From Mobula birostris (Eukaryota): a DNA stretch of 64,000 nt. Positions 4,237-61,515 of the stretch are shown one piece after another (the first letter of the stretch is position 1; the number at the start of each line of letters is the position of its first letter). The position numbers and the translations under genes were made by a program. The notes beneath the pieces were generated by a model. That model saw only the letters and a list, made by a program, of their open reading frames with translations, did no database searches and was not told where the DNA came from. Location of the stretch: the NCBI RefSeq assembly GCF_030028105.1, contig NC_092384.1:3515665-3579664 (forward strand), read 5' to 3'.

Positions 4237-4244
4237 GTGTGTGT

Positions 4245-4316
<72 letters not shown>

Positions 4317-4330
4317 GAGAGAGAGAGAGA
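4237..4330 (+). repeat. (TG)n microsatellite followed by (AG)n
   Basis: About 39 TG units read directly, then a short GA run. Confidence 0.98.
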
Positions 4331-20182: not shown

Positions 20183-20349
20183 NNNNNNNNNNNNNNNNNN
20201 NNNNNNNNNNNNNNNNNNNNNNNNNNNNNNNNNNNNNNNNNNNNNNNNNNNNNNNNNNNNNNNNNNNNNNNNNNNNNNNNNNNNNNNNNNNNNNNNNNNN
20301 NNNNNNNNNNNNNNNNNNNNNNNNNNNNNNNNNNNNNNNNNNNNNNNNN
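20183..20349. other. Assembly gap (167 N)
   Basis: Run of N. Confidence 1.
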
Positions 20350-32620: not shown

Positions 32621-32950
32621 ATGAAGGGCATTGATCGTGAACAGCCAAATATATTTTCCCAGAGCTGAAATGGCTAACATGATGAGGCATAGTTTTAAGG
32701 TGCTTGGAAATTGGTACCATGGGGATGCCCAGGGTATTTTTTTTTTCACACAGAGAGTGGTGGATGCGTGGAATGCTCTGTCGGCCACGGTGATCGACGC
32801 GAATACAATAGGGCAATTTAACAGCCTTTTAAATAGGTGCATGAAGCTTAGAAAGATAGATGGCTAAGCGCCAGGCAGTTTCTAGAGTAGGTGATATTGT
32901 CGGCAAAACATTGTGGGCCGAAAGACGTGGAATATGCTGTGAATTTCTAT
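32600..32950 (+). mobile_element. CR1 3' fragment
   Basis: RHSFKVLG...FFFTQRVVDAWNAL. Confidence 0.8.
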
Positions 32951-40213: not shown

Positions 40214-40631
40214 GATACACAGTGTAATTTTACCACGGCAGGGGACTCTAGAACTTCAGAACAACTGTTCAAAATTAGAGGGCGGAATTTAAAACAAGAG
40301 CGCGTATGTAAGTCATAGGGTGTAGTTTATTTGGAATGAGCTGCCCGGAAGGTAATGGAGGCAGCTACAACCAACGGTTAAAATGTATTTGAACTGGTGA
40401 TTATATTGTAAAGTGTCATGTGATGCGGGCCCAATGCTGCTGATAGGGATTTCGTTTCTATACACTTGCTGTGCTGAACACGATTTCCTATTCAGTGGTC
40501 CATTAATCGTAGCTTTTTTGTTTTGTTGGAATTGGTGATTTCTCATTAAAGTCCTTTGCTTACTCCACAGTTGTTACGAAACAGTAACAGCCCCTCGACA
40601 CCACGATAACCAGTAACGTGTAATACAATTA

Positions 40632-40799
40632 TCAATAGCTATATGTTGCTGTTTTCGTTTCCATATTTCTCGCCTCTTCCTTTATCTTTATTCCAGCATA
40701 CTCGATCTCATGAGTCTTCTGCACTCTTCCTGCGTTTTTCTGAGAAGCGGCGAGATCCACACGTGCATACATAAGTGTATCTTCAGTTCCTTGCATGAT
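40632..40799 (-). CDS. Gene B exon 6, terminal ITIM exon IMQGTEDTLMYARVDLAASQKNAGRVQKTHEIEYAGIKIKEEARNMETKTATYSY*
   Basis: Not in the ORF track. Acceptor tgattgtttccatag|, phase 0. Motifs LMYARV (40775-40758) and IEYAGI (40706-40689) fit the ITIM consensus (I/V/L/S)xYxx(L/V/I). It lies in a non-repetitive island between TEs. Confidence 0.85.
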   Translation of the reverse strand: MMQGTEDTLMYARVDLAASQKNAGRVQKTHEIEYAGIKIKEEARNMETKTATYSY

Positions 40800-43700
40800 C
40801 TATGGAAACAATCATTAGAGATAAGGAGCTTCTGATCCACTATTTTTGAAACCTAATTTAGTCCAAAAGACCAAAAGACAAAGGAGCAGAAGTCGGCCAT
40901 ACGGCCCATCGAGTCTGCTCCGCCATTTTATCATAGCTGACCGATTCTCCCATTGAGTCCCATTCCCCCGCCTTCTCACCATTGATGCCCTGGCTACTCA
41001 CATACCTATCAATCTCTGCCTTAAATACACCCAATGCCTTGGCTTCCACTGTTGCCCAAGGCAACAAATTCCATAGATTCACCACCCTCTGACTAAAAAA
41101 AAAATTCGCATCTCTGTTCTGAATGGGCGCCCTTCAATCCTTAAGTCATGCCCTCTCGTACTAGACTCCCCCATCATGGGAAACATCTTTGCCACATCCA
41201 CTCTGGCCATGCCTTTCAACATTCGAAATGCTTCAATGAGGTCTCCCCTCATCCTTCTAAACTCCAAGGAATACAGTCCAAGAGCGGACAAACATTCCTC
41301 ATATGTTAACCCTCTCATGCCAGGAATCATTCTACTGAATCTTCTCTGTACCCTCTCCAACGTCAGCACATCCTATCTTAAATAAGGAGACCAGAACTGC
41401 CAACAGTGATCCAAGTGAGGTCTCATCACCGCCTTATAGAGCCTCGCATCACATCCCTGCTCCTATACTCTATTCCTCTGGAAATGCATGCCAACATTGC
41501 ATTCGCCTTCTTCACCACTGACTCAACCTGGAGGTTACCCTTAAGGGTATCCTTTACGAGGATGCCCAAGTCCCGTTGCATCTCCGAATGTTCAATTCTT
41601 TCCCCACTTAATTAATAGTGTACCCGTTTTTTTTTTCTGCCAAAGTGCATAACCATACACTTTCCAACACTGTATTTCATTTAGCACGTCTTTGCCCATT
41701 CTTCCAATCTATCCAAGTGTCACTGCAGACTCCCCGTTTCCTCGGCAGTTCCGGCCCCTCCACCTATCTTCGTATCGTCAGCAAACTTAGCCAGAAAACC
41801 ATTTATTCCATAATCCAAATCGTTGATATACAATATAAAAAGAAACGGCCCCAACTCAGACCCCTGTGGAACACCACTGGTAATCGGCAGCCAACCAGAC
41901 CAACCAGAATAGGATCCCTTTATTCCCACTCTCTGTTTCCTGCCAATCAGACAACGCTCTATCCAACGTATGTAAATTTCCCGTAATTCCATGCGCGCTT
42001 TTCTTGTTAAGTAGCCTCATGTGTGGCACCTTGTCAAAGGCCTTCTGAAAATCCAAATATACAACATCTACTGCATCTCCCTTGTCTAGCCTACTGGGAA
42101 TTTCCTCAAAAAAATTGTAATAGGTTTGTCAGGCAGGCTTTTCCTTTAAGGAATCCATGCTGAGTTCTGCCTATCTTGTCATATGCCTCCAGGTACTCTG
42201 TAACCTCATCCTTGACAATCGACTCCAACAACTTCCCAACCACAGATGTCAAGCGAACAGGTCTATAATTTCCATTTTGCTTCCTTACCCGATTCTTGAA
42301 TAGCGGAGTGACATTTGCAGTCTTCCAGTCCTCCGGAACCATGCCGGAATCGATTGACTTTTGATAGATCAACGCTAATACCTCCGCAATCTCCACAGTT
42401 ACTTAAGAACACGAGGGTGTATTCCATCTTGTCTGGAAAATTTATCTAGCTTTGGACTATTCAGCTTCATGAGTACTTTCTCTGTCGTAATTGTGACTGC
42501 GCACACTTTTCTTCCCTGCGACCCTTGAGGGTCCAGTATGGTGCTGATGCATTCCTCAGTGAAGACTGATGCAAAATACTCGTTCAGTTCCTCCGCCATC
42601 TCCTTAACTCCGATTACAATTTCTCCAGCATCATTTTCCATCGGTCTTATATCTACTCTCACCCGTCTTTTGCTCTTTATATACTTGAAAAACCCTTTAG
42701 TATCCTCTTTTGATATTATTTGCTAACTTCCTTTCTTAGTAAATCTTTTCCCTCTTAATGACCTTCTTAGTTTCATAGAAACATAGAAAATAGGTGCAGG
42801 AGTAGGCCATTCGGCCCTTCGACCCTCACCGCCATTTATTATGATCATGGCTGATCATCCAACTCAGAACTCTGCTCCAGCTTTCCCTCCATACCCCCCA
42901 TCCCCGTAGCCACAAGGGCCATATCTAACTCCCTCTTAAATATAGCCAATGAACTGGCCTCAACTGTTTCCTTTGGCAGGTCACCCAGGTCTCCTTGCAC
43001 CTCCCCTTTTCCTAATCGGCCACCATTCAGATAATAATCTGTTTTCCTATTTTTGCCACCAAAGTGGATAACTTCACATTTATCCACATTAAATTGCATC
43101 TGCCATGAATTTGCCCATTCACCCAACCTATCCAAGTCACTCTGCATCCTCTTAGCATCCTCCTCACAGCTAACACTGCCACCCAGCTTCGTGTCATCCG
43201 CAAACTTGGAGATGCTGCATTTAATTCCCTCATCCAAGTCATTAATATATATTGTAAACAACTGGGGTCCCAGCACTGAGCCTTGCGGTACCCCACTAGT
43301 CACCGCCTGCCATTCTGAAAAGGTCCCGTTTATTCCCACTCTTTGCTTCCTGTCTGCTAACCAATTCTCTATCCGCATCAATACCTTACCCCCAATACCG
43401 TGTGCTTTAAGTTTGCACACTAATCTCCTGTGTGGGACCTTGTCAAAAGCCTTTTGAAAATCCAAATATACCACATCCACTGGTTCCCCCCTTCCACTCT
43501 ACTAGTTACATCCTCAAAAAATTCCATGAGATTCGTCAGACATGATTTTCCTTTCACAAATCCATGTTGACTTTGTCCGATGATTTCACCGCTTTCCAAA
43601 TGTGCTGTTATCACATCTTTGATAACTGACTCCAGCAGTTTCCCCACCACCGACGTCAGGCTAACCGATCTATAATTCCCCGGTTTCTCTCTCGCTCCTT

Positions 43701-46700
43701 TTTTAAAAAGTGGGGTTACATTAGCCACCCTCCAATCCTCAGGAACTAGTCCAGAATCTAACGACTTTTGAAAAATTATCACTAATGCATCCACTATTCC
43801 TTGGGCTACTTCCTTAAGCACTCTGGGATGCAGACCATCTGGCCCTGGGGATTTATCTGCCTTTAATCCCTTCAATTTACCTAACAGCACTTCCCTACTA
43901 ACATGTATTTCGCTCAGTTCCTCCATCTCACTGGACCCTCTGTCCCCTACTATTTCTGGAAGATTATTTATGTCCTCCTTAGTGAAGACAGAACCAAAGT
44001 AATTAGTCAATTAGTCTGCCATGTCCTTGCTCCCCATAATCAATTCACCTGTTTCTGTCTGTATGGGACCTACATTTGTCTTTACTAGTCTTTTCCTTTT
44101 TACATATCTATAATAGCTTTTACAGTCAGTTTTTATGTTCCCTGCCAGTTTTCTCTCATAATTTTTTTCCCCTTCCTAATTAAGCCCTTTGTCCTCCTCT
44201 GCTGAACTCTGAATTACTCCCAGTCCTCAGGTGAGCCACTTTTTCTGGCGAATTTGTATGCTTCTTCTTTCCTTTTGTAAGGTTTTAGAAACTTCCCAAT
44301 CCTCTGTCTTCCCACTAACTTTTGCTTCCTTGTATGCCCTCTCCTTTGCTTTAACTTTGGCTTTGACTTCTCTTGTCAACCACGGCTGAATCCTTTTTCC
44401 ATTCGAAAATTTATTCTTTTTTGGAATATACCCGTCTTGTACCTCCCTCACTTCTCGCATAAACTCCAGCCACCGCTGCTCTGCCGTCTTTTCCGCCAGT
44501 CTCCCTTTCCAGTCAACTTTGACCATTTCCTCTCTCATGCCACTGTAATTTCCTTTACACCACTGAAATACCGACACATCAGATTTCGGCTTCTCTTTTT
44601 CAAATTTCACAGTGAATTCAATCATGTTATGATCACTGCCTCCTATGGGTTCCTTCACCTCAATCTCTCTAATCACCCCCGGTTCATTACACAATACCCA
44701 ATCCAGTACCACCGATCCCCTTGTGGGCTCAACAACAAGCTCTTCTAAAAAGCCATCTCGCAGATATTCTACAAATTCTCTCTTGAGATCCAATGGCGAC
44801 CTGATTTTCTGAATCCATTCGCATCTTAAAATGCTCCACAATTATCATAACACCGCCCTTCTGACAAGCCTTGTCTATTTCTTGTTGTAATTTGTAGTCC
44901 ACATGACTGCAGCTGTTTGGAGGCCTATAAATAACTGCCCTCAGGCTCCTTTTACCCCTGCGATTTCTTAGCTCAACACATAAAGATTCTTCACCTTCCG
45001 ATCCTATATCACCTGTTTCTAATGATTTAATTTCATTTTTACCAAAAAAGCCACGCCTCCCCCTCTGCCTACCTTCCTATTCTTCCAATACACCGTGTAT
45101 CCTTGGACGTTCAGCTGCCAGAGACATGCATCCTTTAGCCACGTCTCATTGATGGCCACAGTATCATACTTGCCAATCTGTAGCTGTACAACAAGATCAT
45201 CCACCTTATTCCTTATGCTGCGTGTATTTAAGTATAACAGCTTAAGACCAGTATTTGGTACTTTTCGCTTTGATTTCACTGCAACTTTATTGCATTGTAA
45301 ATCATCCCAATGGTTACAAATTTGCCCCATCACATGCCTGTCTTTCCTGAGATATTTACTGCTCGTTATCTGAGATTTAGTTCTGTTTTCCCCTTCCTCC
45401 ACTCTGTCATTCCGTTTCCCATCCCCCTGCGAAATTAGTGTAAACCCTCCCTAACAACTCTGTTAAACTTACCCGGCAGGATATTGGTCCCCTTCGGGTT
45501 CAGGTGTTACCTGTCCTTTTTGAACAGGTCATACTTCCCCCATAAGAGGTCCCAATTATCCAAGAATCTGAAGCCCTGCCCCCTGCCCCAGTCTCTCAGC
45601 CACGCATTCATCTGCCAGATCCCACTATTCTTGGCCTCGCTAGCACGTGGCACAGTTAGCAATCCCGATATTGCTGGGGCAAGTTTTGAGTAGTCAAGGT
45701 ATTTATAAAGTTTTAAAATTTGCATCACCTGGCCTTTCCAAACGATGATTGTGAACAGGCCATAGCCCTAACAAGCTAATTAAGGTATGAGACTTGGTAA
45801 AAATAATCTAAAAGCTCAAATCTCTTGGGGTGCCCAAATTTTGCATGGTTCTCCTTTCCTTTTTTTCAATCTAAAATTGTACAAAACAAAAATAATACTC
45901 TTAACTTGCTTACAATGTAGAAAAGAATGTTTCATATTTAACTTTAGGACTTTTGGAGATCAGTTCATCTTCTACTCACTTAACTATACGCAGTAACAGA
46001 AATTTTGGCCGGGGTGCTGAAACCTTCGCATACCACTGCACTAGCTACTGTCCTAAACTTTATTTTGTTAGGACGAATGCCCAATTAGAAAATGACGGGC
46101 CTCAGGTAAAATGATTCACGCAGGACCGGTCTGATTAATTAAAATATCAAATGCAGTATCTTGGGGAGCTTAAGGAATTCCTGAATAAGACCAGAAGACC
46201 ATAATACATAGGAGCAGAATTAAGCCATATGGCCCATCGAGTTTGCTCTGCCATTCAACCATGCCTAATACTTTATTTTCTTCTCCTCAACTCCAGTTCC
46301 CGACATCTTCTCGTCATCTTTAATGCTATGTTCAATCAGAGCCTATCTGTCTCTGCCTTAATTACACCCAATGAATTGGCCTACACAGCGATATGTGGCA
46401 TCAAATTCCACAAATTCACAACTTTTTGTTTAAAAAAAAAGTCTCTGCATCTCTGCTTTGAAAGGGCGCCCCTCTTTCCTGAGCCTCTGCTATCTTGTCC
46501 GAGATTCTCCGACCATGGAAAACATCCTTTCCAAAGCTACCCTCTCTAGGTCATTCAACATTCGAAAGGGTTCAATGAGATCCCCCTCAGCCGTTTGAAT
46601 TCCAGCAAGTGCATATGCGGAGCCATCAACCTTTCCTTGTGTGATACAGCTTTCATTCCTGGAATCGTCCTTGTGAAACTCCTCTGAATAAATAAATCGC

Positions 46701-49700
46701 TGAAGATGCTGCACTACATAAGTCAAAGATACAGAACAAAAATGAGCACTGCTTTTCTGGAACATAAGGTGTTATATGCAAAGTGACAGTCATTCTGTTG
46801 CTCTAATTATGTGCTCCTGATAATGGGTGTATGTACAACATATGCTGCGGATATTCTACGAGTCTGTGGTGTCCAGTGCTATCATCTGTTGCTGTTGTGC
46901 GCTGGGGCAGCTGGCTGCGGGTAGCAGACACCAACAGAATCAAGAAACTCATTCGTAAGGCCAGTGATGTTGTGGGGATGGAACTGGACTCTCTCACGGT
47001 GGTGTCTGAAAGCAGGATGCTGTCTAAGTTGCATACCATCTTGGTCAATGTCTCCTATTCACTACATAATGTACTGGATGGGCACAGGAGTACATTCAGC
47101 CAGTGACTCATTCCACCGAGATGCAGCACTGAGCGTCATAGGAAGTCATTCCTGCCTGTGGCCAGCAAAATTTACAACTCCTCCCTTGGAGGGTCAGACA
47201 CCCTGAGCCAATAGGCTGGTCCTGGACTTATTTCTTAATTTACTGGCATAAATTACATATTACTGTTTAACTATTTATGGGTCCATTACTATTTATTATT
47301 TATGGTGCAACTGTAACGAAAACCAATTTCCCCCGGGATCAATAAAGTATGACTATGACTATATATAAACCCCTATATATGTCATAATAATATTAATCTT
47401 ACCTGATTTTCCAGGTAGCGACTTAAGTTCTCATCATTTTCGGCTACAACTGGAGGAAATAAAAAGTGACCAATTTCATCCTCAGCTTGTGAACTGCTGC
47501 ACCGAATGTTATTGAATATTCCAAAAGCAACCAGATCGGTTCGAAATAGGCCAGTGATCTGATGCAATTCTTGTCATTTTATCAAACCACCCAATGATGA
47601 TATTACTGATGATAAAAATTGACCTAGTGTATGCGTAGAATTGTTCAAACTATGTTCTCCTGCGCAACAAACATTCTAAATTTGTAACACTAGTTGCAGA
47701 GTTAACAATATTTTTTTTAGTTGTTACAAAATTCAGTAACATCGAGTAAAATGCGTTTTAAATCTTGTTCTGCACACAACACTCAGCTGTCAGATAGACT
47801 CTCAAGCATATCTACTCAAACCTATATTTTAACATGAATGTTTTATCCTTCTCACTGCCATTTCAACTCCAATATGCTCGTGAAACTAAATATGGGCCAG
47901 GGCAATGTAACGTCTTACCTTCAGTCCTGTCTACTCTGCAGCATCTGATAAGTAACAACAGCGCTAGGATAATGACTCCGCATGCTGCAAGCGCACCCGT
48001 CAGGATCAAGATGAACTGGTATCTGCTTTCTGAGGTGTGCAATAGAAGTCAAATATTAGCATTTTACGGAGATTAAACAATTGAATCACGTGTACTGCGG
48101 ACGTAAAGAATCCGATCCGTACTTTCTCTCGCATCTTGACCACATTGCCTTCGTAGTAAATCGCAAATTGAAATAAAACGTGGATTATGCGTAGGGCATT
48201 AATAAGTAATTATATCAATATTTAATCCAGCTTATTTTCATCAGTAATTCTGTATTCTTGAGGAAGTTGATAAGGCATGGATTGAAGCGAGGGCTGGCAA
48301 ACATACACAAGCGAACTCAGGTCAAAGAATATGATGATGCAAAACGGAATTTCTAGGTCGAGTTGTGAATTGTGCCGGCAAAATTTAGCAGATACGAACT
48401 CTGATATAATAGGCAGGCAGGCTAATATAAGGTGTAGCAGCTTGGTGTGCAGAATTAGGGATATCAATATGTTGTTTTAAACCAGATGAAGGGAAAAGCA
48501 GCTTACATTTATTTATAGTATCATGTCAGGGCAGGTTGCGAAGATGCTAGTAAGGCTTATGCCATTCGTCGGCACAAATGTGGAATCTGAAAGAAGTGAA
48601 GTCATGCCGCATTTTTATTGAACTATGGTCTGGGATATTGTGATATTGTGTTCAATTAGAGTAAGATTGTGACGCGTTAGAGAGGATCCACGAAAGTCTA
48701 TTTCTGTTAGAGATGCTGTCGAAACTGCATGCATTCTTCACTTTGCTCAGTCGTGGAGAAGATAACTGAAGACTCACACACACCGATTATGAAACATTCT
48801 GTTTCTTTACGGGAACATTTTTGTACTACTGATTTATATATGTAACTTATAGTAGGTCGATGACTGCATTGTACTGCTGTCAAACAACAACAAATTTCAG
48901 GTCATGCAATTCAGTGATCAGAAAATTCGGTGAATCTGATCGTGCAAAGTGGAGATCAGATAAAATTACATAAGAGGGCAAGTCTGCATTGCTGATAACA
49001 AGGATTTAGAAAGACAGGATCTGCAAAAGTCAAGGAGTTACGCCATTTATTTTTGCATATTATTCCTTGAAGCAGGAAACAGCAGCAGTATAATATGATA
49101 TCTAACTCTTCTTTGTATAGCCAATGCCTTACATTTCGCTTTCCCCCTTTGAATATGCTCGCTTCATCACTGTTTGTGAGGAATTGATAAATACCAGACA
49201 TAAAACATGTGGTTAAGAATATAAGCCTCTTACCCAATATGATTCTATATGACTCGGAAGCTGGCTCCTTCATAGATTCATGGAACACCTGGCAAGTATA
49301 AACATACCCACTTTCTGTTACATTGAGGGAGCTTGAAACGAGATATAATCCCTCCTCGTTCTGCATTCGTGTGGTATGCATTCCTGAAGTGATTTTGATT
49401 TCATTTTTATACCATATGAGCTCATAGTCCTTCGGGAAAAAAGCAGCAGTTGTGCACGTCAGAGTCACGGAAGGAGCGTTTACTTCGGTGATTTTCAACG
49501 GAGTCGGCGGAACTGCAAATGATTAAAAAAAAGAAGAGAGCTAGAATCTCTAAGCGCGCATTTATCAGAGAAAATAATCGCCGACAGAAAAGTACTCTTC
49601 ACAACCGGGAACGTTAATCTGAATTTAATTTGAAAACATTAATCCCAAATCAAGCAGGTTAAACATTTCTGCATGACGTTTTATGCAGCGATATACATTT

Positions 49701-52700
49701 TCGTTAGTTGTTTTTTTTCTTTGAATAGAACACTTTCAACTCAGGTGAACGTATCACGGAGAACTTACATAAAACCTTTCCGTGTTACTCTTTAACTCCG
49801 TGACCACTATTTATTTCTCCTTATTCCACATGCAAAAAGCTGCAATAAGATTAGTTTGTTTTTTTTGTAAATTTGTCTAATCTTAAATCAACATTTTATA
49901 AATGATTGTATTTGCATTGTGAGAACGTTCTGCACGATCTATAATGTGTTGTGCTATAAAGCATTTCGATTAGGTCCTCGTAATTCTTCTCATATTCTAT
50001 ATGTCGTAATGGTTATACGCCGAAACAACAGAATCTCACTACATATTACACAAACAAATGACTTATTTTTGCAAATACTGAATTCAGTTTGAATCCCATT
50101 ATATCTTCCATCGACTCGTCATACCGATTGAAAATATATACACGTTTAGTCACATCAATTACCTTACAGAGTGTTGCATATAAAAATAATTTGAAGGTAC
50201 AGAAGACCTATTTTAGCTAACGTATGCAATTAAATTTATCGTGAGTTTTAATCTAATTTTGTTGTTATCAAGTGTTGACTTGTATTGTATCGGATCCTGC
50301 CTAATAATTATTTCATTCTCCTTTATACTTGTGTACAGGAAATTACATGAAGCAATCTTGAATCTTGAATTTGGGACCTTCACTGCAGATACCAGTTCCA
50401 CATCTCGGATTGGTAGTGGTTCCACAGACCAATCAGGTGTGCGAGATTGAGTCAAAACAAAGCGGGAAGAGTTGATAACAAAACGCAGCTTAACTACTTT
50501 TGGAGAAACTTAACGGAAGGACGTTTTGAACGCAAGGTGGTCTACACTATCTAGTATGATTAACAGCCAAGATCTTACAGTGTAGAAGGACGTGCGAGAT
50601 TCTGATTACTGACGCAGTGCTGCAAAATGATGCAGTGAGTAATTTGTAATACCATTGAATGTGTTACTATCAAAAACAATGTAAGGAAAGAACGTTCAAT
50701 TCAGAAAGTAATTCATCAGCAATAGAAAAAACCAAGAAGCTTTTGTGAGAACAAATCTCCTTTTTGTACAGAGTGTAAATCCTACACTAGGTTTAGTGAG
50801 AAAAAGAGATCGTTTTATAAGCCGAAATAAAAAAGCCACTTTTAAATCAGGAATAAGTGTTGTATCAACTGTTCTGTAACTCGCTTAATAAAATGTTACT
50901 ATTTAGAGAGGATGGAATAATGATATCCATCTGAATGGACTGGAAGTGGAAATCAGTATATATGGAGGGGGCATGGAACTTGGGCGTGTTGCAATTGTTA
51001 GTTGAAATTAGTGCGGCACAACAGCATTCTGTATAATCGACAGACATTGAAATGTCAACTAATCAAATTCCTATAAGGGCCATAATTAAATCTCTCACTA
51101 TTCATCACACATACAATTGGTTATCCAACAATGCTCTAATCGGTGTCGCATTAAGACTGCTAATTCCAACATGTTTACCCGGAACAAACCTGTTTGCAAT
51201 ACGAAAAAATATCGTATAGCGATGTGCTCTATTTTCTACATTAAACTAGAACAACGCTTAAACAATAATTGAGAGTTCCATAGAGAGGATTGACATAAAC
51301 AGAACCCTTGTACCGTACGTGCCTAATCACTCAAAGTAGTGACACAGTTGGGAAATGTGGCGAAGAAGGCAGTTTGATATTCCTGCCTGCGTTGGTCAGG
51401 AATTGAGACGTCAGGCTGAAATTGCACAAGTCGTTGGCGAGAACATACTTGGGGTATTGTCCATGGTTCCCTTCACCTAGCCACAGCATAAATGTCATTA
51501 ATCTGGAATGAGTGCGTGCAGCACTGGCTCTGCAGGATTTCATTTACTTGGAGAATCTACGACTCTTTGTCAGCAGAGAAGGAGGTCGAAGAGTGCTCTG
51601 ATAGATGCTTATAAAGTTATAAGGACCAAGATAATGTGGATAGTCAAAGTCTTCTTCCCAGATTCTCGGTGTTTGCAACTAGAGGGATGGATTTAAAATG
51701 AATGGGCATAGGTTTAAATTGAACTTAAAAGGTATTTTTTTCTGCACACTTGGCAGTAGGTACATGAAATGACATGCACGAGGAAGTTGAGGAAGCGGGA
51801 TAAAATGATAATGCCAAAGAAAAAGAAACATTCAGACATGCGCATGAATAGAAAAAAAATGTGTTCAGGGATGTTGGGGTTTGTTCGGCATGTCAGATTT
51901 GGGTTGAGAAGTGTCCGTCTAGGTTGTATAAATCTATGACTCGTGTGAAAAAAAAATCAAGCTAATTTTGTGCATTTTAATAACCCTACAATTTTAGCGG
52001 TTAATTGGTTTCCTGCAGTTCTCTCCTGTCTGTCAACATGCAAGAAAAAACAACAATTTTTTTTCTAACACACTGAAAGATCATGGCCGATCTGCATTTT
52101 CACTTTCAAGTTGGAAGGTGAAATGTACAATGACTTTGTCGCCGGGGAGATATCATTCTGTTAAATCGGCTTGGAGAGGAAAGTGATCGTGGTTGGCAAT
52201 GGGAAATGAAACAAAACAGAATGAATGAAAACGAGCCAAAAAAACGTAAGTATTATTTCATGCCCAACCCTCCTGCTCTCCATGACAGGGTTTCTCTAGA
52301 TCTAGTTACGAAGAAGAAAAATACCCGATTTAAGAAGAAGCTACGTCAATAAACTTAATGATCCAAGCACAGCGTAGTGAGATTGTTCCGGTGTAGGTTA
52401 TTTAGCGACATTTAATGCCATTCTTTTAATAATGCCATGGAATAGAAACATAGAAACATAGAAAATAGTTGCAGGAGTAGGCCATTCGGGCCTTACAGCC
52501 TGCACCGCCATGCAGTATGATCATGGCTGATCATCCAACTCAGAACCCTGTACCTGCCTTCTCTCCATACCCCGATCCCTTTCCTCACCAGGGCCATATC
52601 TAACTCCCTACTAAATATAGCCAATGAACTGGCCTCAAATGTTTCCTGTGGCAGAGAATTCCACAGATTCACCACTCTCTGTGTGAAGAAGTTTTTCCTG

Positions 52701-55700
52701 ATCTCGGTCCTAAAAGGCTTTTCCTTTATCCTTAAACTGTGACCCGTCGTTCTGGACTTCCCCAATAGCGGAAACAATCTTCTTGCATCTAGCCTGTCCA
52801 ATCACTTTATGATTTTGTACGTTTCAATAAGAACCCCCTTCAATCTTCTAAATTCCAGCGAGTATAAGCCTAGTCGATCCAGTCTTTCATCATATGAAAG
52901 TCCTGCCATACCAGGAATCAATCTGGTGAACGTTCTTTGTACTCCTTCTATGGCAAGAATGTCTTTCCTCAGATTAGGGGACCAAAACTGCACACAGTAC
53001 ATAGAACATATAACGTAGAATAGTACAGCACAGTACAGGCCCTTCGACCCACAATGTTGTGCCGACACTCAAACCCTGCCTCCCATATAAGCCCCCACCT
53101 TAGATTCCTCCATATACCTGTCTAGTAGTCTCCCAAACTTCACCAATGTAACTGCCTCCACCACTGACTCAGGCAGTCCATTCCACGAACCAACCACTCT
53201 CTGAGTAAAACACCTTCCTGTAATATCCCCCTTGAGCTTCCCACCCCTTACCTTAAAGACATGTCCTCTTGTATAGAGCAGCGGTGCCCTGGGGAAGAGG
53301 CGCTGGCTGTCCACTCTATCTATTCCTCTTATTATCTTGGACACCTCTATCATGTCTCCTCTCATCCTCCTTCTCTCCAAAGAGTAAAGCCCTAGCTCCC
53401 TTAATCTCTGATCATAATGCATACTTTCTAAACCAGGCAGCATCCTGGTAAATCTCCTCTGTACCCTTTCCAATGCTTCCATATCCTTCCCATAGTGAGG
53501 TGACCAGAACTGGACACAATACTCCAAGCGTGGCCTGACCAGAGTTTTATGGAGCTGCATCATTACATCGCGGCTCTTAAACTCTATCCCTCGACTTATG
53601 AAAGTTAACACCCAATAAGCTTTCTTAACTACCCTATCCACCTGTGAGGTAACTTTCAGGGACCTGTGGAAATGTACCCCGAGATCCCTCTGCTCCTCCA
53701 CACTACCAAGTATCCTGCCATTTACTTTGTACTCTGCCTTGGAGTTTGTCCTTCCAAAGTGTACCACCTCACACTTCTCCGGGTTGAACTCCATCTGCCA
53801 TTTCTCAGCCCACTTCTGCATCCTATCACTGTCTCTCTGCAATCTTTGACAATCCTCTACACTATCTACAACACCACCAACCTTTGTGTCGTCTGCAATC
53901 TTGCCAACCCATCCTTCTACCACCACATCCAAGTCGCCAATAAAAATCACGAAAAGTAGAGGTCCCAGAACAGATCCTTGTGGGACACCACTAGTCACAA
54001 TCCTTCAATCTGAATGTGCTCCCTCCACCACCATCCTCTGCCTTCTGCAAGCAAGACAATTCTGAATCCACCTGATCGAACTTCCCTGGATCCCATGCCT
54101 TCTAAATTTCTGAATAAGCCTACCGTGTGGAACCTTGTCAAATGCCTTACTAAAATCCATATAGATCACATCCACTGCACTACCCTCATCTATATGCCTG
54201 GTCACCTCCTCAAAGAACTCTATCAGGCTTGTTAGACATGATCTGCCCTTCACAAAGCCATGCTGACTGTCCCTGATCAGACCATGAGTCACTAAATGCC
54301 TATAGATCCTATCTCTGAGAATCTTTTCCAACAGCTTTCCCACCACAGACGTAAGGCTCACTGGCCTATAATTGCCCAGACTATCTCTACTACCTTTTTT
54401 GAACAACATTCGCCTCCCTCCAATCCTCCGGTAACATTCCTGTGGACAACGCGGACGTAAAGATCCTTCCCAGAGGCTCAGCAATCTCTTCTCTCGCCTC
54501 GTGGAGCAGCCTGGGAAATATTACGTCAGGCCCCGGGGACTTATCTGTCCTAATGTATTTTAACAACTCCAACTCCTCCTCTCCCTTAATATCAGCATGC
54601 TCCAGAACATCAACCTCACTCATATTGTCCTCACCGTCATCAAGTTCCCTCTCATTGGTGAATAGCGAAGAGAAGTATTGATTGAGGACCTCGCTCACTT
54701 ACACAGCCTCCAGGTACATCTTCCCACCTTTATCTCTAATCGGTCGTACCTTAAGTCCTTTCATCCTTTTTTTCTTGACGTAATTGAAGAATGCCTTGGA
54801 GTTTTCCTTTACCCTCCTCGCCAAGGCCTTCTCATGCACACTTCTTGCTCTCCTCAGCCCCTTTTTAAGCTTCTTTCTTGTTTCCCTATATTCATCAATA
54901 GACCCAGCTGATTCTTGCTTCCTAAACCTCAAGTATGCTGCCTTCTTCCTCCTGACTAGATTTTCCACCTCACTTGTCACCCATGGTTCCTTCACCCTAC
55001 CATTCTTTATCTTTCTCACCGGGACAAATTTATCCCTTACATCCCGCAAGAGATCTCTAAACATCGACCACGTGTCCATAGTGCATTTCCCTGCAAAAAC
55101 ATCATCCCAATTCACACCCGCAAGTTGTAGCTTTATAGCCTCATAATTTGCCTTTCCCCAATTAAAAATGTTCCTGTCCTCTTTGATTCTATCCTTTTCC
55201 ATGATAATTATAAAGGCCAGGGATTGGTGTTCACTGTCCCGCAGATGGTCACCCACTGAGAGATCTGTGACCTGACCCGGTTCATGAACTAGTACTAGAT
55301 CTAGCATGGCATTCCCCCTGGTCGGCCTGTCCACATACTGTGACAGGAATCCATCCTGGACACACTTAACAAATTCTGTGCCATCTAAACCCTTGGAACT
55401 AATCAGGTGCCAATCAATATTAGGGAAGTTAAAGTCACCCATGGTAACAACCCTGTTATTTATGCACCTTTCCAAAATCTGCCTCCCAATCTACTCATCT
55501 GTATCTCTGCTGCTACCAGGGGGCCTATAGAATACCCCTAGTAGAGTAACTGCGCCCTTCCTGTTCCTGACTTCCACCCATATTGACTCAGAAGAAGATC
55601 CGCTACATTATCCATCCTTTCTGTAGCTGTAATAGTATCCCTGACAAGTAATGCGACCCCTCCTCCCGTTTTTCTGCCCTCTCTATCCCTTTTAAAGCAC

Positions 55701-58700
55701 TGAAATCCAGGAACATTGAGAATCCATTCCTGCCCTGGTGCCAGCCAAGTCTCTGTAATGGCCACTACATCATAACTCCATGTATGTATCGAAATTCAGT
55801 TCATCACCTTTGTTCCTGATGCTTCAGGTGTTGTCTTACCGAGACCTTGACAACTGCAGTGGTACCTCCCTGCTGCTGTACTTGAATCCTGTTGCAATGA
55901 ATATCAGCATACCATTCGCCTTTTTCAACGCCTGCTGTACCTGCATGCCCACTTTCAATGACTGGTGTATAATGACACCCAGGTCTCGTTGCACCTCCCC
56001 CTTTCCTAATCGGCCACCATTCAGATAATAATCTGTTTTTCTGTTTTTGCCACCAAAGTAGATAACCTCACATTTATCCACATTGACTTACCTCTGTAAA
56101 TTTAAGGTGTTGTAATATCAGGTATTGTAATATATAATGTTTGGATTTCATTATTTCCTTAATAAACTGTTTCTTCCGTCATTCATTTTGCTGCTGTCTG
56201 ACAGTATGCGATTTTCCTCACCGGACGGGGTTCAGGTGTAACATTCACAGACAAGAACAGAACTCAGTGACTACCAAAACCTTGTAACCCCTCACTAGTG
56301 ACGAAACACTCGACCCCTCTATTTGGTTGTGTCAGAGGAAATTACTGCTTATTTAACACAATACGTTCTACCCCTATGTTCTAATTCTCTAAACCCGCTG
56401 AAAGTTCTGCGTCGCCTGAGCATAACACACCGTCACCCATGTGCTTGCCTTGTTTGAAACAAAGCCTTGCGGGAAACTTTGGTCGAGGCCTGCAAGATTG
56501 TTTTTTTGACGAAATCTCAAAATATTCCGTGATATTTCGTCATAACTACAACCCAAGCCTATGTAGAGCAAAGGCTTCCAATTCAAGAAAAAAAAATGGT
56601 GTCCACCCACTGTAAGCAGCAAGGCCATCGTTCCGGGGAAATAATTCAGCGATCCTACCCGGATGTCTGGTAAACATCCTGAATCTGCATACCTAGATGT
56701 TCTGTGGAAGATATTCATCAGAGGTTTTGCATAGCTCCAGAAGTTGCGGTAAACGTATATTTCCGGAATAAATAGCATTGCAGCAGGTAAAGGAATAAAC
56801 AAAAAAATGTTTGATGGACGCAGAGGATCGAGAACGCGTGATTGTGGAAGTCAGCATGTTGGACCATGCTGGAATGAGGGGCAAGCAGGGGAATGAAAAA
56901 TAATAAGTAACAGGAGGAATAAAATAAGCAGGAATTGCAGTAAGAGTGAAACAATAAAGCTAAAATTTTTAATTCTCTTGTGATCAGGACAGAATTTATA
57001 AAGCAAATCTGCCAAAGATACTATACCCTTTGCCATTATTTCAAATGAATCTGGTGAAATATTTATTTTAAAATGTTACAGATCATTATTTGTGTAATGT
57101 TTTGGACGCTACGTGTTTTTGATTTGTCTCTGAGGCTGCAGCAAGGTATGACAAAATGATGAAAACTCCCTGACGTTCAGAACGGAATATAAAGAAGGAT
57201 TTTTTTTTTCAGAGTAACATCGTTAACCTGCGGGAAAGACTGGAAAATAATATTGGAACAAAAAAGGAAAATACCGTCTTTTCTGGGGGAACATATTGCT
57301 GTAGCAATTTTCCAACTAGCTTGATGCAGTAATGCAGACATAAGGTGATAAGAGGGCACATAATTAAATAAAGGTTGCTTCCAGTACTGTAATGACAATG
57401 ATGACCAGAAATTGCGGGTTTCACTGCTGAGCAAAATAAATTATAAATTTCCCAGTGACAGCTTCGAAATGTATAACAAGGACATATCATCCCAAGGAGG
57501 GTTACAACCGTTAAATGTTTAGGAATTCTGAATTTAACAGGTATTTCTATTTTTTACATTCTTTGGACCAATCTTTTGTTAGACGTTGCATTGATTATGT
57601 GTACAATGCTCAATTGTGTGATTTAAAGTGTTTTGTCTTCCATCGTGAGCAAACATACTACCATTTATTTTACCGATCCCTGCCTCCAAGACAAACTTAT
57701 ATTACATGCTGTACCGCATTCACAACTGAAACTCGCAAAATGTCATGAAATCTTTCATATATTTATTATTATTAATATCACTGTTTTATTTTTACATGTT
57801 CTACTGTTTAACTGATTACTTAAGAACGTAAGAAATAGGAGCAGAAGAAGGCCATCTGGCCCCTAGAGCCTGCTCCGACATTCAATAAGATCACGGCTGA
57901 TCTGGTCATGGACTCATCTCCATACCTACCTGTCTTTTCTCCGTAATCGTTAATTTCCCTACTATACAAAATTTTTATCCAACCTTCTATAAAATCTGTT
58001 AACTGAGGTAGCCTCCACTGCTTCACTGGGCAGAGAATTGCACAGATTTAGCATTCTAAACTAAGTAATAAACTGTGTTTTTAAATAAAACAGAGAACAA
58101 ACTAGAACACGGTCAATACCACTAAAACCGTCTAGTGGTTCCTAATAGTTATTGACGGAGGAATTCATACAGTGCACGCTGCTGTGTATTTTTTTCAGAA
58201 TCAGAATGTGCGGCAGCGGATATGGTAGCTCACAGGACTAGAACCACAATCAGCGGCTTTTCAGACGGCCTTAGATCACCAGGACAATACCAATACGCGC
58301 TCACGATGCTGCTTGCAGTTCGTTGACTCCAGCCTTTATCACCATCATTCTTTCAGTCTGATTGATAAGCTATGGGTCTCTGTATCTCCCTCAGCAATTG
58401 GATTTTCGACTTGCTGACCTGAAGAAAACAATTTGTATCAATAACTCCTCCTCACTGAGGACCAACACTGGCGCATCTCTGGAATGTGCCCTTAGCCCAC
58501 TTATCTACTCTCTCTATATCCATGGCTATGTAGCTAGGCATAGCTAAAATGTCAGCAATAAATTTGGCAATGATACAACAATTGTTGGCAGAATCTCAGA
58601 TGGAAAGGGGAGGGCGTACAGCAGAGAGCGATATTAGCCAACTGAGTGGAGTTGCAGCAACGACCTTTCACTCAACGCAGTAAGACGAGAAAGTTGACTG

Positions 58701-60857
58701 AGGTCTTCAGAAACAGCAGGAGGAGGGATCATAAATCAATCCTCAAATTGGGAGAGAGAAGGCAATTTCAAGTTCCTGGGTGTCAATATCTCTGGGGAAC
58801 GAACCTGGCCCTAACAAATCGACGTTGCTATAATGTGGGCAAGTTAGTGGCTATATTTTTTTGGAAGTTTGAGGAGATTTGGTTTGTCACCTAAGACCCT
58901 CGGAAACGTCTAGGGATGTACCAGAAGAGCATTTTGACAGGTTGCATCACCGTCTGGCATGCTGGGGAGCGACTACTGTACCAGATCGAAAGAAGCTACA
59001 GTAAGTTATAAATGAGTTAGTTCTATCATGGGTGCTAGCATCCATAGTATCCAAGACATCTTCAAGGAGCAGTGTCTCTGGAGGACTGCCTTCATCATTA
59101 AGGACTTCCATTACCCAAGACATGTCCTCTTCTCATTATAACCCTAAGGAAGGAGGTGTGAAAGCGTGAAGACACACACTCAGCGATTCAAAGAAATCTT
59201 TCTTCCTCTCTGCTATCCGATCTCTCATGGATAATGAACCTATAAACACTACCTTACTGACATCAGCACTGGACTCCAAGGCCGGATTGTTCTGAGTTCA
59301 AACTCAGCCGGGTCCCAGCCTGGACAGCAGCAGTGTCTGCAGAGAACAAATGCCCGGCCATCTACTTTCATATCTGCCATGAATACCCTGTATACCCTTT
59401 GGTCCACGATGTCACGAAGAGTCGGACTCGACTTAAGGACTTAACAACTGAACAACAACTTTAAATGATTTTGCTGATTTTCTCTTTTTCCTATATTATT
59501 AGGTTGTATTTGCTTTATATTGTACTGCTGCCGGTACGTTAATAAATTTCACGACGTATCCCGTCGATGATTTTAGTCCTGATTCTGATTCTGATTATAA
59601 GTTAATTCTGTTTAGAAGTTCTCCATTCGCTAAATAGACATAACAAACATTTATTTATTTTTTTTTTCCATTTGCAAAGTGACAGACAGACTCGAGTTTA
59701 CAAATGAACTATTCTCGGGCTTTCCTAATGATGCCAGAGTATGCAACCGAGACATCGGTTGCAATTGATATTTGTACCCGGCTGGAAACCCGAGAAGCGG
59801 TTATTTGTTATATATGCTGACAAAACATTAGAACTTTTTCCAGAATCGTTTTGATATTCTGCAGGTAATCGCTGAATTCTTAACTTACGAAGGCCACGAC
59901 ATCATCTGTAACTCACAGGTCTACAATCGGATGAAATAATTTCAGTTAACACATGTAATATTCTATTTCAGTAATTGCCTAGCTACGGACTTAAAATCCT
60001 TCATTAGATATACATCCCAGAATTAAATTTCCAGATAAAAAAGGAGCATAATTTTTTTTTGAAATTAGAAAGCAATGTTCTTTCGGAGATTACACTGTTC
60101 CACCAACAGTAAACGGTGGTTATTCAAACCCGAAAGGAAGAATACTATTGTGGATAGTGTGGCAGTCCCTTGTTCTACTTTATCAATATATAACGCGCTC
60201 CGTTAAATGTAGTCGTTGCATTTGTCTAAGACACGCCGAGTGAGACTTACCGTGTACAATAACGTTCGTGCCACTGCCTTGGGAAAATTTTCTTGTCCAG
60301 TCTCTCACACTGCAATAATAGATTCCAGAGTCACCGAAGCTCACCCCGAGGATATGGAGTTCGGCAGAACCTTGCTCTGAAGTTATAATACTCATCCTTC
60401 TCTCTGCAGTGGCATCTATAAATTGTTTTTGTCCCCCTTTCCTCCAATAAGCATCCACCAGTGAGTTATGAGCGAAGATTGGGTAGGTGCAGTAAATTGA
60501 CACATTTTCACCCTCTGCCTTCGTCACCTGCTCAGGAATCTGGTTCACTGTGAACGAGGCCCTGCCAGCAACTGTCAGAATGAAAAACATTCGTTATCAG
60601 AGCATAATGATCGGCATTATTGACCAGAAAAAAAAACATATACTGTTACTGTAAACGAAAAAAGGTCAATTTCCTTGTGATTGAAGTAAATCAATTGTAA
60701 ATATCTAAACTGCGATTTACTAATCGAGCAAAAAGTACCTCATGAAGATATTCCCTGCCCCCACTCCGTTATTCAGCATTAACGAGAGAAGCGTATACAT
60801 ACCAGTGTAAGTAATCTGCAGGACTAAGATATACTGCAGCAAAGTAAATATTTGCAT
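40632..60857 (-). CDS. Gene B: complete 6-exon VJ-C1-TM-2xITIM inhibitory Ig-superfamily receptor (SIRP/NITR-like), 326 aa; join(60857..60803, 60571..60251, 49512..49234, 48029..47919, 47449..47403, 40799..40632)
   Basis: Manual splicing. All five introns are GT-AG with compatible phases (1,1,1,1,0). Exon lengths 55+321+279+111+47+168 = 981 nt = 326 codons plus TGA, with no internal stop. Domain order is leader, V, C1, TM, cytoplasmic tail with two ITIMs. Confidence 0.88.
40858..42775 (-). mobile_element. CR1 LINE RT and 3' end (gene B intron 5)
   Basis: NYRPVRLTSVVGK, DFQKAFDKVPH, GVPQGSELGP, KFADDTK, YSLEFRRMRGDL. Confidence 0.92.
42777..45660 (-). mobile_element. Young composite CR1 LINE (ORF1 esterase end, EN, RT with internal deletion, 3' tail)
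   Basis: Long open ORFs 42845-43480, 43420-44010 and 44227-44841; RT jumps from GEVQGDLG directly to LPKETVEASS; tail catagaaacatagaaa. Confidence 0.92.
45665..45860. mobile_element. Possible Tc1/mariner remnant
   Basis: ggggtgcccaaattttgca resembles Tc1 terminal repeats as I recall them; no partner TIR found. Confidence 0.3.
46830..47362 (+). mobile_element. Rex1-like LINE 3' end with (TATGAC)n tail
   Basis: ADTNRIKKLIRKASDVVG...STFSQ; aataaagtatgactatgactat. Confidence 0.82.
47403..47449 (-). CDS. Gene B exon 5, short cytoplasmic exon (V)VAENDENLSRYLENQ
   Basis: Strong polypyrimidine acceptor ctttttatttcctccag| and donor CAG|GTAAG. It is 47 nt and gives exactly the phase 1 to 0 change needed to join the TM exon to the ITIM exon. 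Confidence 0.8.
47919..48029 (-). CDS. Gene B exon 4, transmembrane exon (E)SRYQFILILTGALAACGVIILALLLLIRCCRVDRTE
   Basis: Not in the ORF track. Acceptor cttctattgcacacctcag|, donor GAAG|GTAAGA, phase 1-1, 111 nt. About 23 hydrophobic residues with no charge, followed by RCCR. Confidence 0.9.
49234..49512 (-). CDS. Gene B exon 3, Ig C1-set domain
   Basis: Acceptor tttttttaatcatttgcag|, donor TTGG|GTAAG. VPPTPLKIT...VTLTCTTAAFFPKDYELIWYKN...GLYLVSSSLNV...YTCQVFHESM carries the C1 hallmarks C-x4-F-x-P, W, and YTCxVxH. Confidence 0.95.
52444..56082 (-). mobile_element. Nested CR1-in-CR1: host copy at 52444-53000 and 55822-56082, inserted copy at about 53001-55820
   Basis: Host reading frame breaks at YCVQFW (52998) and resumes at 55822. 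The insert carries EN, RT and its own 3' tail, including a 309-aa ORF at 53069-53998. Confidence 0.88.
58330..59598 (+). mobile_element. Old Rex1-like LINE RT and 3' end with (ATTCTG)n tail
   Basis: TGASLECALSPLIYSLY, KFGNDTTIVG; cctgattctgattctgatt tail. Confidence 0.75.
59258..59459 (+). mobile_element. tRNA-derived SINE with RTE-type 3' tail
   Basis: B-box-like gagttcaaactc at about 59297; tail gtcacgaagagtcggactcgactt...gaacaacaac. Confidence 0.6.
60251..60571 (-). CDS. Gene B exon 2, Ig V-set domain with J-like G strand
   Basis: Acceptor ttttcattctgacag|, donor CACG|GTAAGT. Sequence FTVNQIPEQVTKAEGENVSIYC...YWRK...LHILGVSFGDSGIYYCSVRDWTRKFSQGSGTNVIVH has the canonical Cys, Trp, DxGxYxC and GxGT motifs. 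Confidence 0.95.
60803..60857 (-). CDS. Gene B exon 1, signal peptide MQIFTLLQYILVLQITYT
   Basis: ATG at 60857, hydrophobic 18-aa stretch, phase-1 donor ACTG|GTATGT, 231 nt upstream of the V exon acceptor. Confidence 0.8.
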
Positions 60858-60919
60858 TTTGAACAGAAGCAATAAAATCGAACAGTGGTAACTGTCTGGC
60901 AGCGGCTCAGTCAAATAAC

Positions 60920-61160
60920 ACAATGAAAGGAAGCTTTGAGGGTGCCTGATGGAAGTGCTGTTGCAACTGATGACTTTGTTTCAAATTACGTCACAACGGC
61001 GAACAAAAAAAACGTTTAAAGTTGCACGCTGGCTGGACGTATCTGATATTACAATCAGGTCAGAATTTCCATTGGCTTTCTCAGTTGTTATGAAACACAT
61101 TGAGAAATGGAAATCGAATGCGAGAGTAACACGGCGGAAAGATACACCGCTGTGGTTTCA
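60920..61160 (-). promoter_or_regulatory. Putative proximal promoter of gene B with ETS (GGAA) and RUNX-like sites
   Basis: AGGAAG at 60928-60933, GGAAGTG at 60951-60957 and TGTGGTT at 61151-61157, 70-300 nt upstream of the ATG. These short motifs can occur by chance and the TSS is unknown. Confidence 0.3.
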
Positions 61161-61423
61161 GTGTCTATTTGAAAAACCAAAAACCCATGCAGTCACAGCA
61201 TTAGAGTGAAAAGGAACAGGCAGAACAATTGAACCTAATACTTCTGCCTTCGTAGGAGCTCGCAGAAGCTTTAGATAAATAGTGTCGCATAAAGGATAAG
61301 TGCAAATGATAGAGGAAAAGGAAACTCTATCAAAAACTAAGAGGAAATAATGAGCCGAAAACTGATGAATCCAGACAGCTAATTGTCAAAATCCGGGCTT
61401 CCAAACGGATGTGGGGTGTGGGG

Positions 61424-61430
61424 GAGAGAA

Positions 61431-61508
<78 letters not shown>
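61424..61508 (+). repeat. (GA)n microsatellite about 570 nt upstream of gene B ATG
   Basis: About 40 GA units read directly. Confidence 0.98.

Positions 61509-61515
<7 letters not shown>

Follow-up and report, generated by a model that had tools for sequence, protein, structure and literature searches.

Organization of the Locus

The stretch of DNA considered here, hereafter the window, comprises 64,000 nucleotides (nt) of contig NC_092384.1 (positions 3,515,665 to 3,579,664 of the forward strand) in the RefSeq assembly GCF_030028105.1 of the ray Mobula birostris. Its principal feature is a six-exon gene on the minus strand (60857-40632) encoding a membrane receptor, in which a variable (V) domain with a joining (J)-like strand is followed by one constant domain of the C1-set, an uncharged transmembrane segment and a cytoplasmic tail with two immunoreceptor tyrosine-based inhibitory motifs (ITIMs). 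The exon map was obtained by direct reading together with a scripted rebuild, and its conceptual splice of 981 nt translates into 326 amino acids (aa) with no internal stop codon. Probably, the locus holds an intact and transcribed gene for an inhibitory receptor, belonging to a batoid clade that forms part of a V(J)-C1 receptor family spread across the chondrichthyans.

Exon 1 (60857-60803, 55 nt) opens with the ATG at 60857 and carries 18 codons of a split leader (MQIFTLLQYILVLQITYT) plus one nucleotide, and exon 2 (60571-60251, 321 nt) supplies the final leader residues, the V domain, a stretch resembling complementarity-determining region 3 and the J-like strand. The C1-set domain lies in exon 3 (49512-49234, 279 nt), which reads VPPTPLKI... 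and includes Cys145, Trp159 and the motif YTC199xVxH. No further immunoglobulin (Ig) exon was found between 49234 and 48029, where exon 4 (48029-47919, 111 nt) begins, encoding a cysteine-free connecting peptide, the transmembrane segment and the juxtamembrane sequence RCCRVDRTE. The cytoplasmic exon 5 (47449-47403, 47 nt) encodes VVAENDENLSRYLENQ, with Y267 in a YxN context, and exon 6 (40799-40632, 168 nt) encodes the ITIM-bearing tail and closes with the stop codon at 40632-40634. The first polyadenylation-signal hexamer 3′ of the stop, which is a motif match only to the pattern AATAAA/ATTAAA, lies about 300 nt away at 40326-40331 on the same strand and would imply a 3′ untranslated region (UTR) of roughly 300 nt.

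All five introns begin with GT and end with AG, the donors being GTATGT, GTAAGT and, in three cases, GTAAGA, and every acceptor is pyrimidine-rich and ends in CAG or TAG. Introns 1-4 are in phase 1, which is usual for domain exons of the immunoglobulin superfamily, and intron 5 is in phase 0. Exon 5 is the sole 47-nt candidate that combines a strong acceptor (TTTTATTTCCTCCAG) with a strong donor (GTAAGA), and all 14 residues compared are identical (14/14) in the paralogues P0005 and P0006 (database proteins are given here by such numbers). Two introns are long: intron 2 (49513-60250, 10.7 kb) contains debris of long interspersed nuclear elements (LINEs) on the gene's own strand, with reverse-transcriptase and endonuclease open reading frames (ORFs) and a match to RVT_1 at 53072-53998, and intron 5 (40800-47402, 6.6 kb) contains LINE debris with an RVT_1 match at 42848-43480. 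The LINE fragments in these two introns, lying on the gene strand, account for most of the 20-kb span.

The first-pass annotation, made from the letters alone, had proposed this uninterrupted six-exon, 326-aa model, and it is upheld by splice sites that are canonical throughout, by the lack of internal stops and by a gap-free counterpart in Mobula hypostoma. The same annotation had remarked that a list of ORFs represents the gene poorly, and indeed the transmembrane exon lies within a 59-aa ORF and the ITIM exon within a 54-aa ORF, both below the 60-aa cut, while the leader and exon 5 are found inside unrelated-looking ORFs of 67 and 61 aa, respectively.

Domain Architecture and Predicted Structure

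Pfam recognizes a V-set domain in exon 2 (44.3 bits, E 2.4e-11), whose landmarks are Cys46, Trp61 and DSGIYYC105, and the J-like G strand GSGTNVIVH, carrying the GxGT motif, was read directly at 60252-60278 (minus strand) within the same exon. The only CACAGTG in the interval 60100-60700 is coding sequence of framework region 1 at 60552 without a nonamer, and no recombination signal sequence (RSS) was found there between V and J. Since exon 2 runs from the V into the J-like codons without a break and no RSS accompanies them, the gene does not rearrange. The transmembrane segment F224-I246 (47947-48015) is uncharged and falls within an AlphaFold helix of residues 221-252, and the connecting peptide before it, ESYRIILESRYQ, has no cysteine. 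The lack of a membrane-proximal cysteine makes a disulfide-linked dimer of the T-cell receptor (TCR) or light-chain type unlikely. The tail comprises 74 residues with a first ITIM, LMYARV (Y282, 40758-40775), and a second, IEYAGI (Y305, 40689-40706), their tyrosines spaced 23 residues apart, and an additional YxN tyrosine (Y267) and a juxtamembrane CC pair are also present. Direct reading and Pfam therefore agree with the architecture first proposed, namely a V(J) already joined in the germline, a single true C1-set domain, a transmembrane segment without charge and two ITIMs.

The AlphaFold model of the whole protein has a mean predicted local distance difference test (pLDDT) value of 80, the ectodomain lying mostly above 90, and most ten-residue blocks of residues 31-250 reach 85-98, with two at 76-78; the V domain modelled alone has a pLDDT of 90. 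When the whole model was compared with the PDB by Foldseek, the top 50 matches were antibody light chains (E ~1e-16, 18-25% identity). The V domain alone matched CD79b, CD8beta, Ig kappa V, NKp30 and TCR V domains, and VIA-align related it to NCAM Ig1, to the skate IgNAR V (Z 15.3, 98/104 residues) and to the TCRdelta V at 32% identity. The antigen-receptor-like character that had been ascribed to the ectodomain is supported by the light chains standing first in the PDB and by the likeness of the isolated V domain to Ig and TCR V domains. Look-alikes of the V domain in the ESM Atlas were generic V-set clusters headed by a 'putative antigen receptor (fragment)', which is a lead only. A profile of the V domain searched against PDB sequences was uninformative, being dominated by the summed scores of proteins with many Ig domains such as titin and contactin, and the C1 exon found Ig constant domains and UrIg2 (9dmx_A, E 2.5e-15). 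As modelled, the V domain is a compact, J-type domain with almost no C′-C″ region and without any single nearest family.

Against Swiss-Prot, the same whole-model search was led by PD-L1, CD276, Skint and butyrophilins (E 1e-15 to 1e-18, TM-scores of ~0.45-0.5), and at similar scores and 14-23% identity it included SIRPalpha (in fourth place), TAPBPR, TCRbeta, Ig lambda and B7-H6. These leading matches, together with the shared layout of V, IgC and transmembrane segment and with the NCBI names 'CD276 homolog', 'butyrophilin-like' and 'NCR3 ligand 1-like' given to some members of the family, could be taken to mean that the gene encodes a ligand of the B7/butyrophilin type, whose tail motifs would be incidental as in B7-H6. 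We regard this as very unlikely. The whole-model matches stand at a low identity of about 15-20%, and exon 3 scores as C1-set in Pfam (54.9 bits, E 1.2e-14) well above the CD80-like C2-set_2 (29.2 bits). The V domain has a J-like GxGT strand and by itself resembles CD79b, CD8beta, NKp30 and Ig/TCR V domains, not the V domains of B7 proteins. Moreover, the family, described below, includes tail-less siblings with a transmembrane arginine, the hallmark of paired receptors, and the tandem spacing of its ITIM and switch-type (ITSM) motifs is fixed.

Orthologue, Paralogues, and Possible Exon Exchange

Databases were searched with the C1-containing open frame as query, which brought proteins of up to ~329 aa within reach. 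The search returned P0001, a 326-aa RefSeq protein of M. hypostoma that aligns with the model end to end without gaps, with 299 of 326 residues identical (92%), and that RefSeq calls 'tyrosine-protein phosphatase non-receptor type substrate 1-like'. At the domain junctions the residues agree in all four cases, and the differences are distributed over all exons with no frameshifts and no stops; the V domain is 93% identical, and 50 of the 55 residues of exon 6 are shared. The P0001 gene spans ~18 kb and the window gene 20.2 kb. Such a gap-free counterpart of the same 326 aa argues for conservation since the two species split.

The 361-aa paralogues P0004-P0006 of M. birostris and M. hypostoma, as well as P0007 of Hemitrygon, possess an extra 35-aa exon (...GSPSYADL...) between exons 5 and 6. 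This SPSYADL exon is absent from intron 5 of the window gene, where tblastn (up to E 1000, word size 2) and an ITIM regular expression returned only noise, and because P0001 lacks it as well, its loss seems common to both Mobula species. The distal tyrosine motif differs too, reading TEYAGI, of the immunoreceptor tyrosine-based switch motif (ITSM) type, in the Mobula and Hemitrygon relatives including P0001, and IEYAGI, a canonical ITIM, in the window gene. Apart from the orthologue P0001, the closest V type is that of P0005 (96/107), and the C1 domain stands nearer to the P0006 type (83/93 vs. 75/93). This mosaic similarity suggests, on sequence comparison, that exon exchange or gene conversion may have taken place among clustered paralogues. 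The C1 exon is flanked by phase 1 introns on both sides, which makes its in-frame skipping possible, and the C1-less isoforms that RefSeq lists for the paralogues P0008, P0009 and P0032 fit this arrangement.

A Chondrichthyan Family of V(J)-C1 Receptors

When P0001 served as query for phmmer in an exhaustive search, 913 representative clusters were returned at E <=1e-3, 48 of them at E <=1e-30, and among the 30 matches whose source names were looked up, all those at E <=2e-21 were chondrichthyan; relatives from osteichthyans were reached as well. Sharks are represented by Heptranchias, Heterodontus, Scyliorhinus, Mustelus and Hemiscyllium/Chiloscyllium, skates and rays by Amblyraja, Pristis, Hemitrygon, Hypanus and Mobula, and chimaeras by Callorhinchus; Carcharodon and Narcine were added by a word-indexed profile search, which gave 23 matches, 22 chondrichthyan and the remaining one without taxon, and which is not informative on absence elsewhere. 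In each species, many paralogues reside on a single chromosome. The names given by RefSeq conflict with one another, including SIRPalpha-like, SIRPbeta-like, tapasin-related-like, Ig lambda-1 light chain-like, CD276 homolog, butyrophilin-like, NCR3 ligand 1-like and H-2 class I-like. In the literature searched, we found no publication that describes this chondrichthyan V(J)-C1 family; it exists as computer predictions under inconsistent names and is apparently undescribed.

The V consensus of the family, VYWWK.GE...DSGxYYC...NGTGTxLxV, includes the J-like strand in the same exon, and the window gene keeps its invariant G, C, W and C. The C1 consensus is VPPTPLKI...C.TAAF.P...W...EGLY.VSS.L...VYTC.VSH, of which the invariant P, C, F, W, L, C and H are likewise retained. 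Following these domains, members possess one of two modules. The inhibitory module consists of an uncharged transmembrane segment and a tail of 70-140 aa with the motifs LxYAxL and xEYAxI/L, and the tail of the window gene conforms to this pattern, with a proximal LxYAxV/L ITIM and a distal xEYAxI/L about 23 residues further on. The activating-type module has the transmembrane sequence R[FIL][IL]LG...IIV[DE]H and almost no tail, a combination well known as the mark of activating partners that couple to adaptors. Two C1 domains occur in a few members, e.g., P0021 of Amblyraja.

A separate observation concerns the charges of the activating-type members P0002, P0012, P0019, P0034, P0037 and P0053, whose transmembrane segments have an arginine near the outer end and Asp/Glu-His at the inner end (...IIVDHLK), a pattern conserved from rays to the sevengill shark. 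To judge from its sequence, this two-charge pattern may define the adaptor that these members use.

With a hidden Markov model (HMM) of the family's V-C1 region, the window gene scores 267.6 bits and members score 176-284, against 84-123 for proteins of osteichthyans with a V-C1-transmembrane layout and 73-93 for SIRPs. A maximum-likelihood tree was built from the V+C1 region of 47 rows, with no Ig, TCR, UrIg, NKp30, B7 or tapasin references, and for this reason the family cannot be placed among those. In this tree P0001 is the sister of the window gene (97/95), and both fall in a seven-row batoid clade (100/100) where inhibitory and activating forms occur together; the activating P0002 is sister to P0006, an inhibitory member (100/95). 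The V-C1-transmembrane proteins of coelacanth, reedfish and turtle form a common cluster (98/84), which is weaker when the frog protein is included (82/71), and these osteichthyan proteins fall on the chondrichthyan side of the split that separates off the SIRPs. By this comparison the family has distant relatives in bony vertebrates, namely coelacanth, reedfish, turtle and frog. The proposal that the gene belongs to a little-described chondrichthyan family is supported by the HMM score, by the batoid clade and by the lack of a describing paper. The gene is not a singular one; instead, it is one member of a large multigene family with paired inhibitory and activating forms.

The name borne by P0001 and by many other members, 'tyrosine-protein phosphatase non-receptor type substrate 1-like', points to SIRPalpha, and it can be asked whether the gene is the ray orthologue of SIRPalpha, functioning as a receptor for CD47. 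SIRPs resemble the family in having an N-terminal V domain followed by C1-set domains, an SHP-recruiting ITIM tail, short-tailed siblings with a charged transmembrane segment and a clustered multigene organization, and this common logic, the fourth place of SIRPalpha in the Swiss-Prot search and the two C1 domains of the skate P0021 are in favor of such orthology. However, a SIRP carries a pair of C1 domains and four tyrosines in its tail, whereas the window gene has a single C1, and the bird and coelacanth SIRPs are split from all 45 other rows of the tree by a branch of 1.61 (100/99). The coelacanth possesses a SIRP (P0203) in addition to a separate V-C1-transmembrane homologue (P0137), no SIRP V domain occurs among the top 30 structural matches of the V domain alone, and the automatic names are inconsistent, since tapasin-related, Ig lambda, CD276, B7-H6-like and H-2 class I are applied to members as well. 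Given the one C1 domain, the separate SIRP clade and the low HMM scores of SIRPs, the window gene is not a SIRP orthologue, and we hold a role as ray SIRPalpha to be highly improbable; the relationship to SIRPs that had been suggested earlier is reduced to analogy.

Evidence for Transcription

Read sets from four runs were compared with the window at an identity threshold of >=95%. The runs had been selected by a search with the V exon, of whose sampled words the best runs contain up to 75%. Within 60000-61200, cover is confined to 60251-60571 and 60803-60880, with zero in intron 1 and in the flanks. The joint 60571|60803 (CT..AC on the plus strand) is exact in two runs, one 115-nt contig crossing it with 0 mismatches and reaching 60880, and a separate 170-nt contig lies on the V exon, also with 0 mismatches. 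The 5′ UTR accordingly extends at least 23 nt, to at least 60880. The exact joint of exons 1 and 2 and the exon-only cover indicate that transcripts arise from precisely this copy and undergo splicing at junction 1. Mapping of RNA had been proposed as the check on all five junctions, and it has succeeded for the first of them; junctions 2-5, for which no direct joints were seen in the four runs, rest on splice signals and on the gap-free collinearity with P0001.

Several observations weigh against an intact and transcribed inhibitory gene. In the interval 47300-49600, exons 4 and 5 are uncovered in all four runs, exon 3 is covered only in patches and no joints are seen. A 358-nt contig ends at the acceptor of exon 3 with 4 mismatches in 115, and as it was not recovered on this V exon, it is probably derived from a paralogue. 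The runs themselves are only guessed to be RNA. Tyrosine motifs comparable to those of the tail also occur in proteins that are not inhibitory. Lastly, no protein was flagged among the database matches as the window's own. The earlier warning that annotation could miss the gene is borne out only partly, since RefSeq has a collinear 326-aa model in M. hypostoma and 361-aa paralogue models in M. birostris.

The missing cover on exons 4 and 5 and the little cover on exon 3 would be expected if the locus were a decaying or non-functional copy, with a frame still open by its youth and with only exons 1 and 2 transcribed, perhaps spliced elsewhere. The absence of the 35-aa tyrosine exon, the introns swollen by LINE debris and a neighboring paralogue without the second canonical V cysteine could be read in the same way. 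Against this, none of the six exons is interrupted and their splice sites are canonical, every invariant residue of the family is retained, and the M. hypostoma counterpart matches the 326-aa structure throughout with no gap, its differences from the window gene being scattered across all exons without frameshifts or stops. Decay therefore seems to us unlikely, and we favor an intact gene with an inhibitory tail.

As an observation in its own right, run X5 yields a 60-nt contig that joins the V exon at 60309-60338, just past the Cys codon (TGC AGT | GTGAGA, donor-like), to a C1 start of the paralogue type, TTCCGCCGGTGCC... This joint would shift the frame; the contig probably stems from a near-identical paralogue in which a cryptic donor is used on rare occasions.

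Proposed Function

The core of the first-pass annotation, an antigen-receptor-shaped, non-rearranging, inhibitory receptor, is a reasonable inference. From the tail sequence we infer that the protein would recruit SHP. The receptor would be a type I membrane protein whose V domain binds a putative ligand, and after ligand engagement both ITIM tyrosines, Y282 and Y305, would be phosphorylated by Src-family kinases. SHP-1 or SHP-2 could then dock at pY282/pY305 with their tandem SH2 domains and dampen signalling through immunoreceptor tyrosine-based activation motifs (ITAMs), including that of the activating siblings, whose ectodomains are nearly identical and whose transmembrane arginine presumably links them to an ITAM adaptor. 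In the window copy, the extra tyrosine-bearing exon of the family has been lost or is never spliced in, and the distal ITSM-type TEYAGI has changed to the canonical ITIM IEYAGI.

Relation to Antigen Receptors and Other VJ Genes

The gene shares with Ig light chains and TCRs the V(J)-C1 ectodomain and the GxGT of the G strand. It differs from them in having no V/J split, RSS or interchain cysteine, in its uncharged transmembrane segment and ITIM tail, and in an identity of no more than 18-25%. NKp30 is similar in its VJ-type V domain with a G strand of the form G-x-G-N/T-G-T...L-V-V, and it occupies ranks 5, 6, 10 and 11 among the structural matches of the V domain (TM-score ~0.78); a V-only isoform of the family member P0185 is even named NCR3-like by NCBI. 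NKp30 carries a transmembrane arginine, as do the activating members of the family. In contrast, NKp30 is activating and has no C1 domain, whereas the window gene has a C1, ITIMs and an uncharged transmembrane segment, and the likeness of the V folds goes no further than resemblance. Single V domains without a C1 are reportedly also the form of the chicken PRARPs. PRARP (Fu et al. 2019, J Immunol 202:1992) is cited as a VJ gene linked to the major histocompatibility complex (MHC) (PMC10751288).

In elasmobranchs, UrIg and UrIg2 are non-rearranging genes with a single-exon VJ, a split leader and C1-type domains, of which UrIg2 has nine in the nurse shark and eleven in the epaulette shark model, the crystallised fragment being V-C1-C2-C3 (PMC12227049). 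Each is described as an individual gene, with linkage to the MHC or to the antigen-receptor complex, and ITIMs have 0 occurrences in that paper (PMC12227049). They are like the present family in that both are germline VJ genes of cartilaginous fishes with a split leader and a following C1-type domain or domains. In the present family, however, one C1 is the rule and two are rare, the genes form a large multigene set and their modules are of the ITIM or the activating kind; the family is a different gene type.

Germline-joined VJ genes with a C1 domain have been sought as possible likenesses of the receptor into which the RAG transposon moved, UrIg and UrIg2 being the current candidates. The layout of the present family, with exactly one VJ, one C1 and a transmembrane segment that is either followed by ITIMs or charged, is more TCR- and light-chain-like than that of UrIg, and the family appears to be hidden behind misleading automatic names. 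It is tempting, if a long shot, to see the family and its relatives in coelacanth, reedfish, turtle and frog as one gnathostome-wide lineage of non-rearranging, membrane-bound receptors with a single V(J) and a single C1, in paired inhibitory and adaptor-coupled forms. Were this true, it would be the surviving gene type closest in layout to the precursor of TCRs and Ig light chains before the RAG transposon split the V exon, and it would speak for that precursor independently of UrIg and UrIg2, as a second line of evidence. The value of the single gene is modest: it is a clean, intact and partly RNA-supported example with a defined exon map that illustrates how the family has diversified by exon loss, change from ITSM to ITIM and mosaic V/C1 similarity, and it could serve as a probe in expression studies, ligand hunts and SHP-recruitment assays.

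Other Features of the Window

A second, divergent member of the family lies at the left edge of the window on the plus strand, tail-to-tail with the main gene, and comprises a V exon cut by the edge (1-303) and a C1 exon (1897-2180) that is 57% identical to P0023 of Heptranchias. Its V domain has the J-like strand NGTGSKLVVH, and YYFGV stands at the position of the second canonical cysteine; no transmembrane or tail exon was found downstream of it within the window. This member at 1-2180 may be a pseudogene or may possess an unusual V domain. A leader-like tblastn match at 32774-32842 (E 0.04-0.3) has stop codons inside it and was dismissed as noise.

In intron 5, positions 47300-47363 correspond to a short dispersed repeat ending ...CCCCCGGGATCAATAAAGTATGACTATGACTAT, with a summed word depth of 20,000-95,000 and matches in hundreds of contigs in all four runs. 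Rfam gave no match for it, and it is likely a tail of the short interspersed nuclear element (SINE) type, embedded in many transcripts. LINE fragments with endonuclease and reverse-transcriptase ORFs are located at 14906-15961 (plus strand), 42845-44010 (minus) and 53069-55475 (minus), the latter two being those of introns 5 and 2. A run of 167 N occupies 20183-20349, and long (GA)n/(CT)n and (CA)n/(GT)n microsatellites are present at 61330-61570 and 4234-4419.

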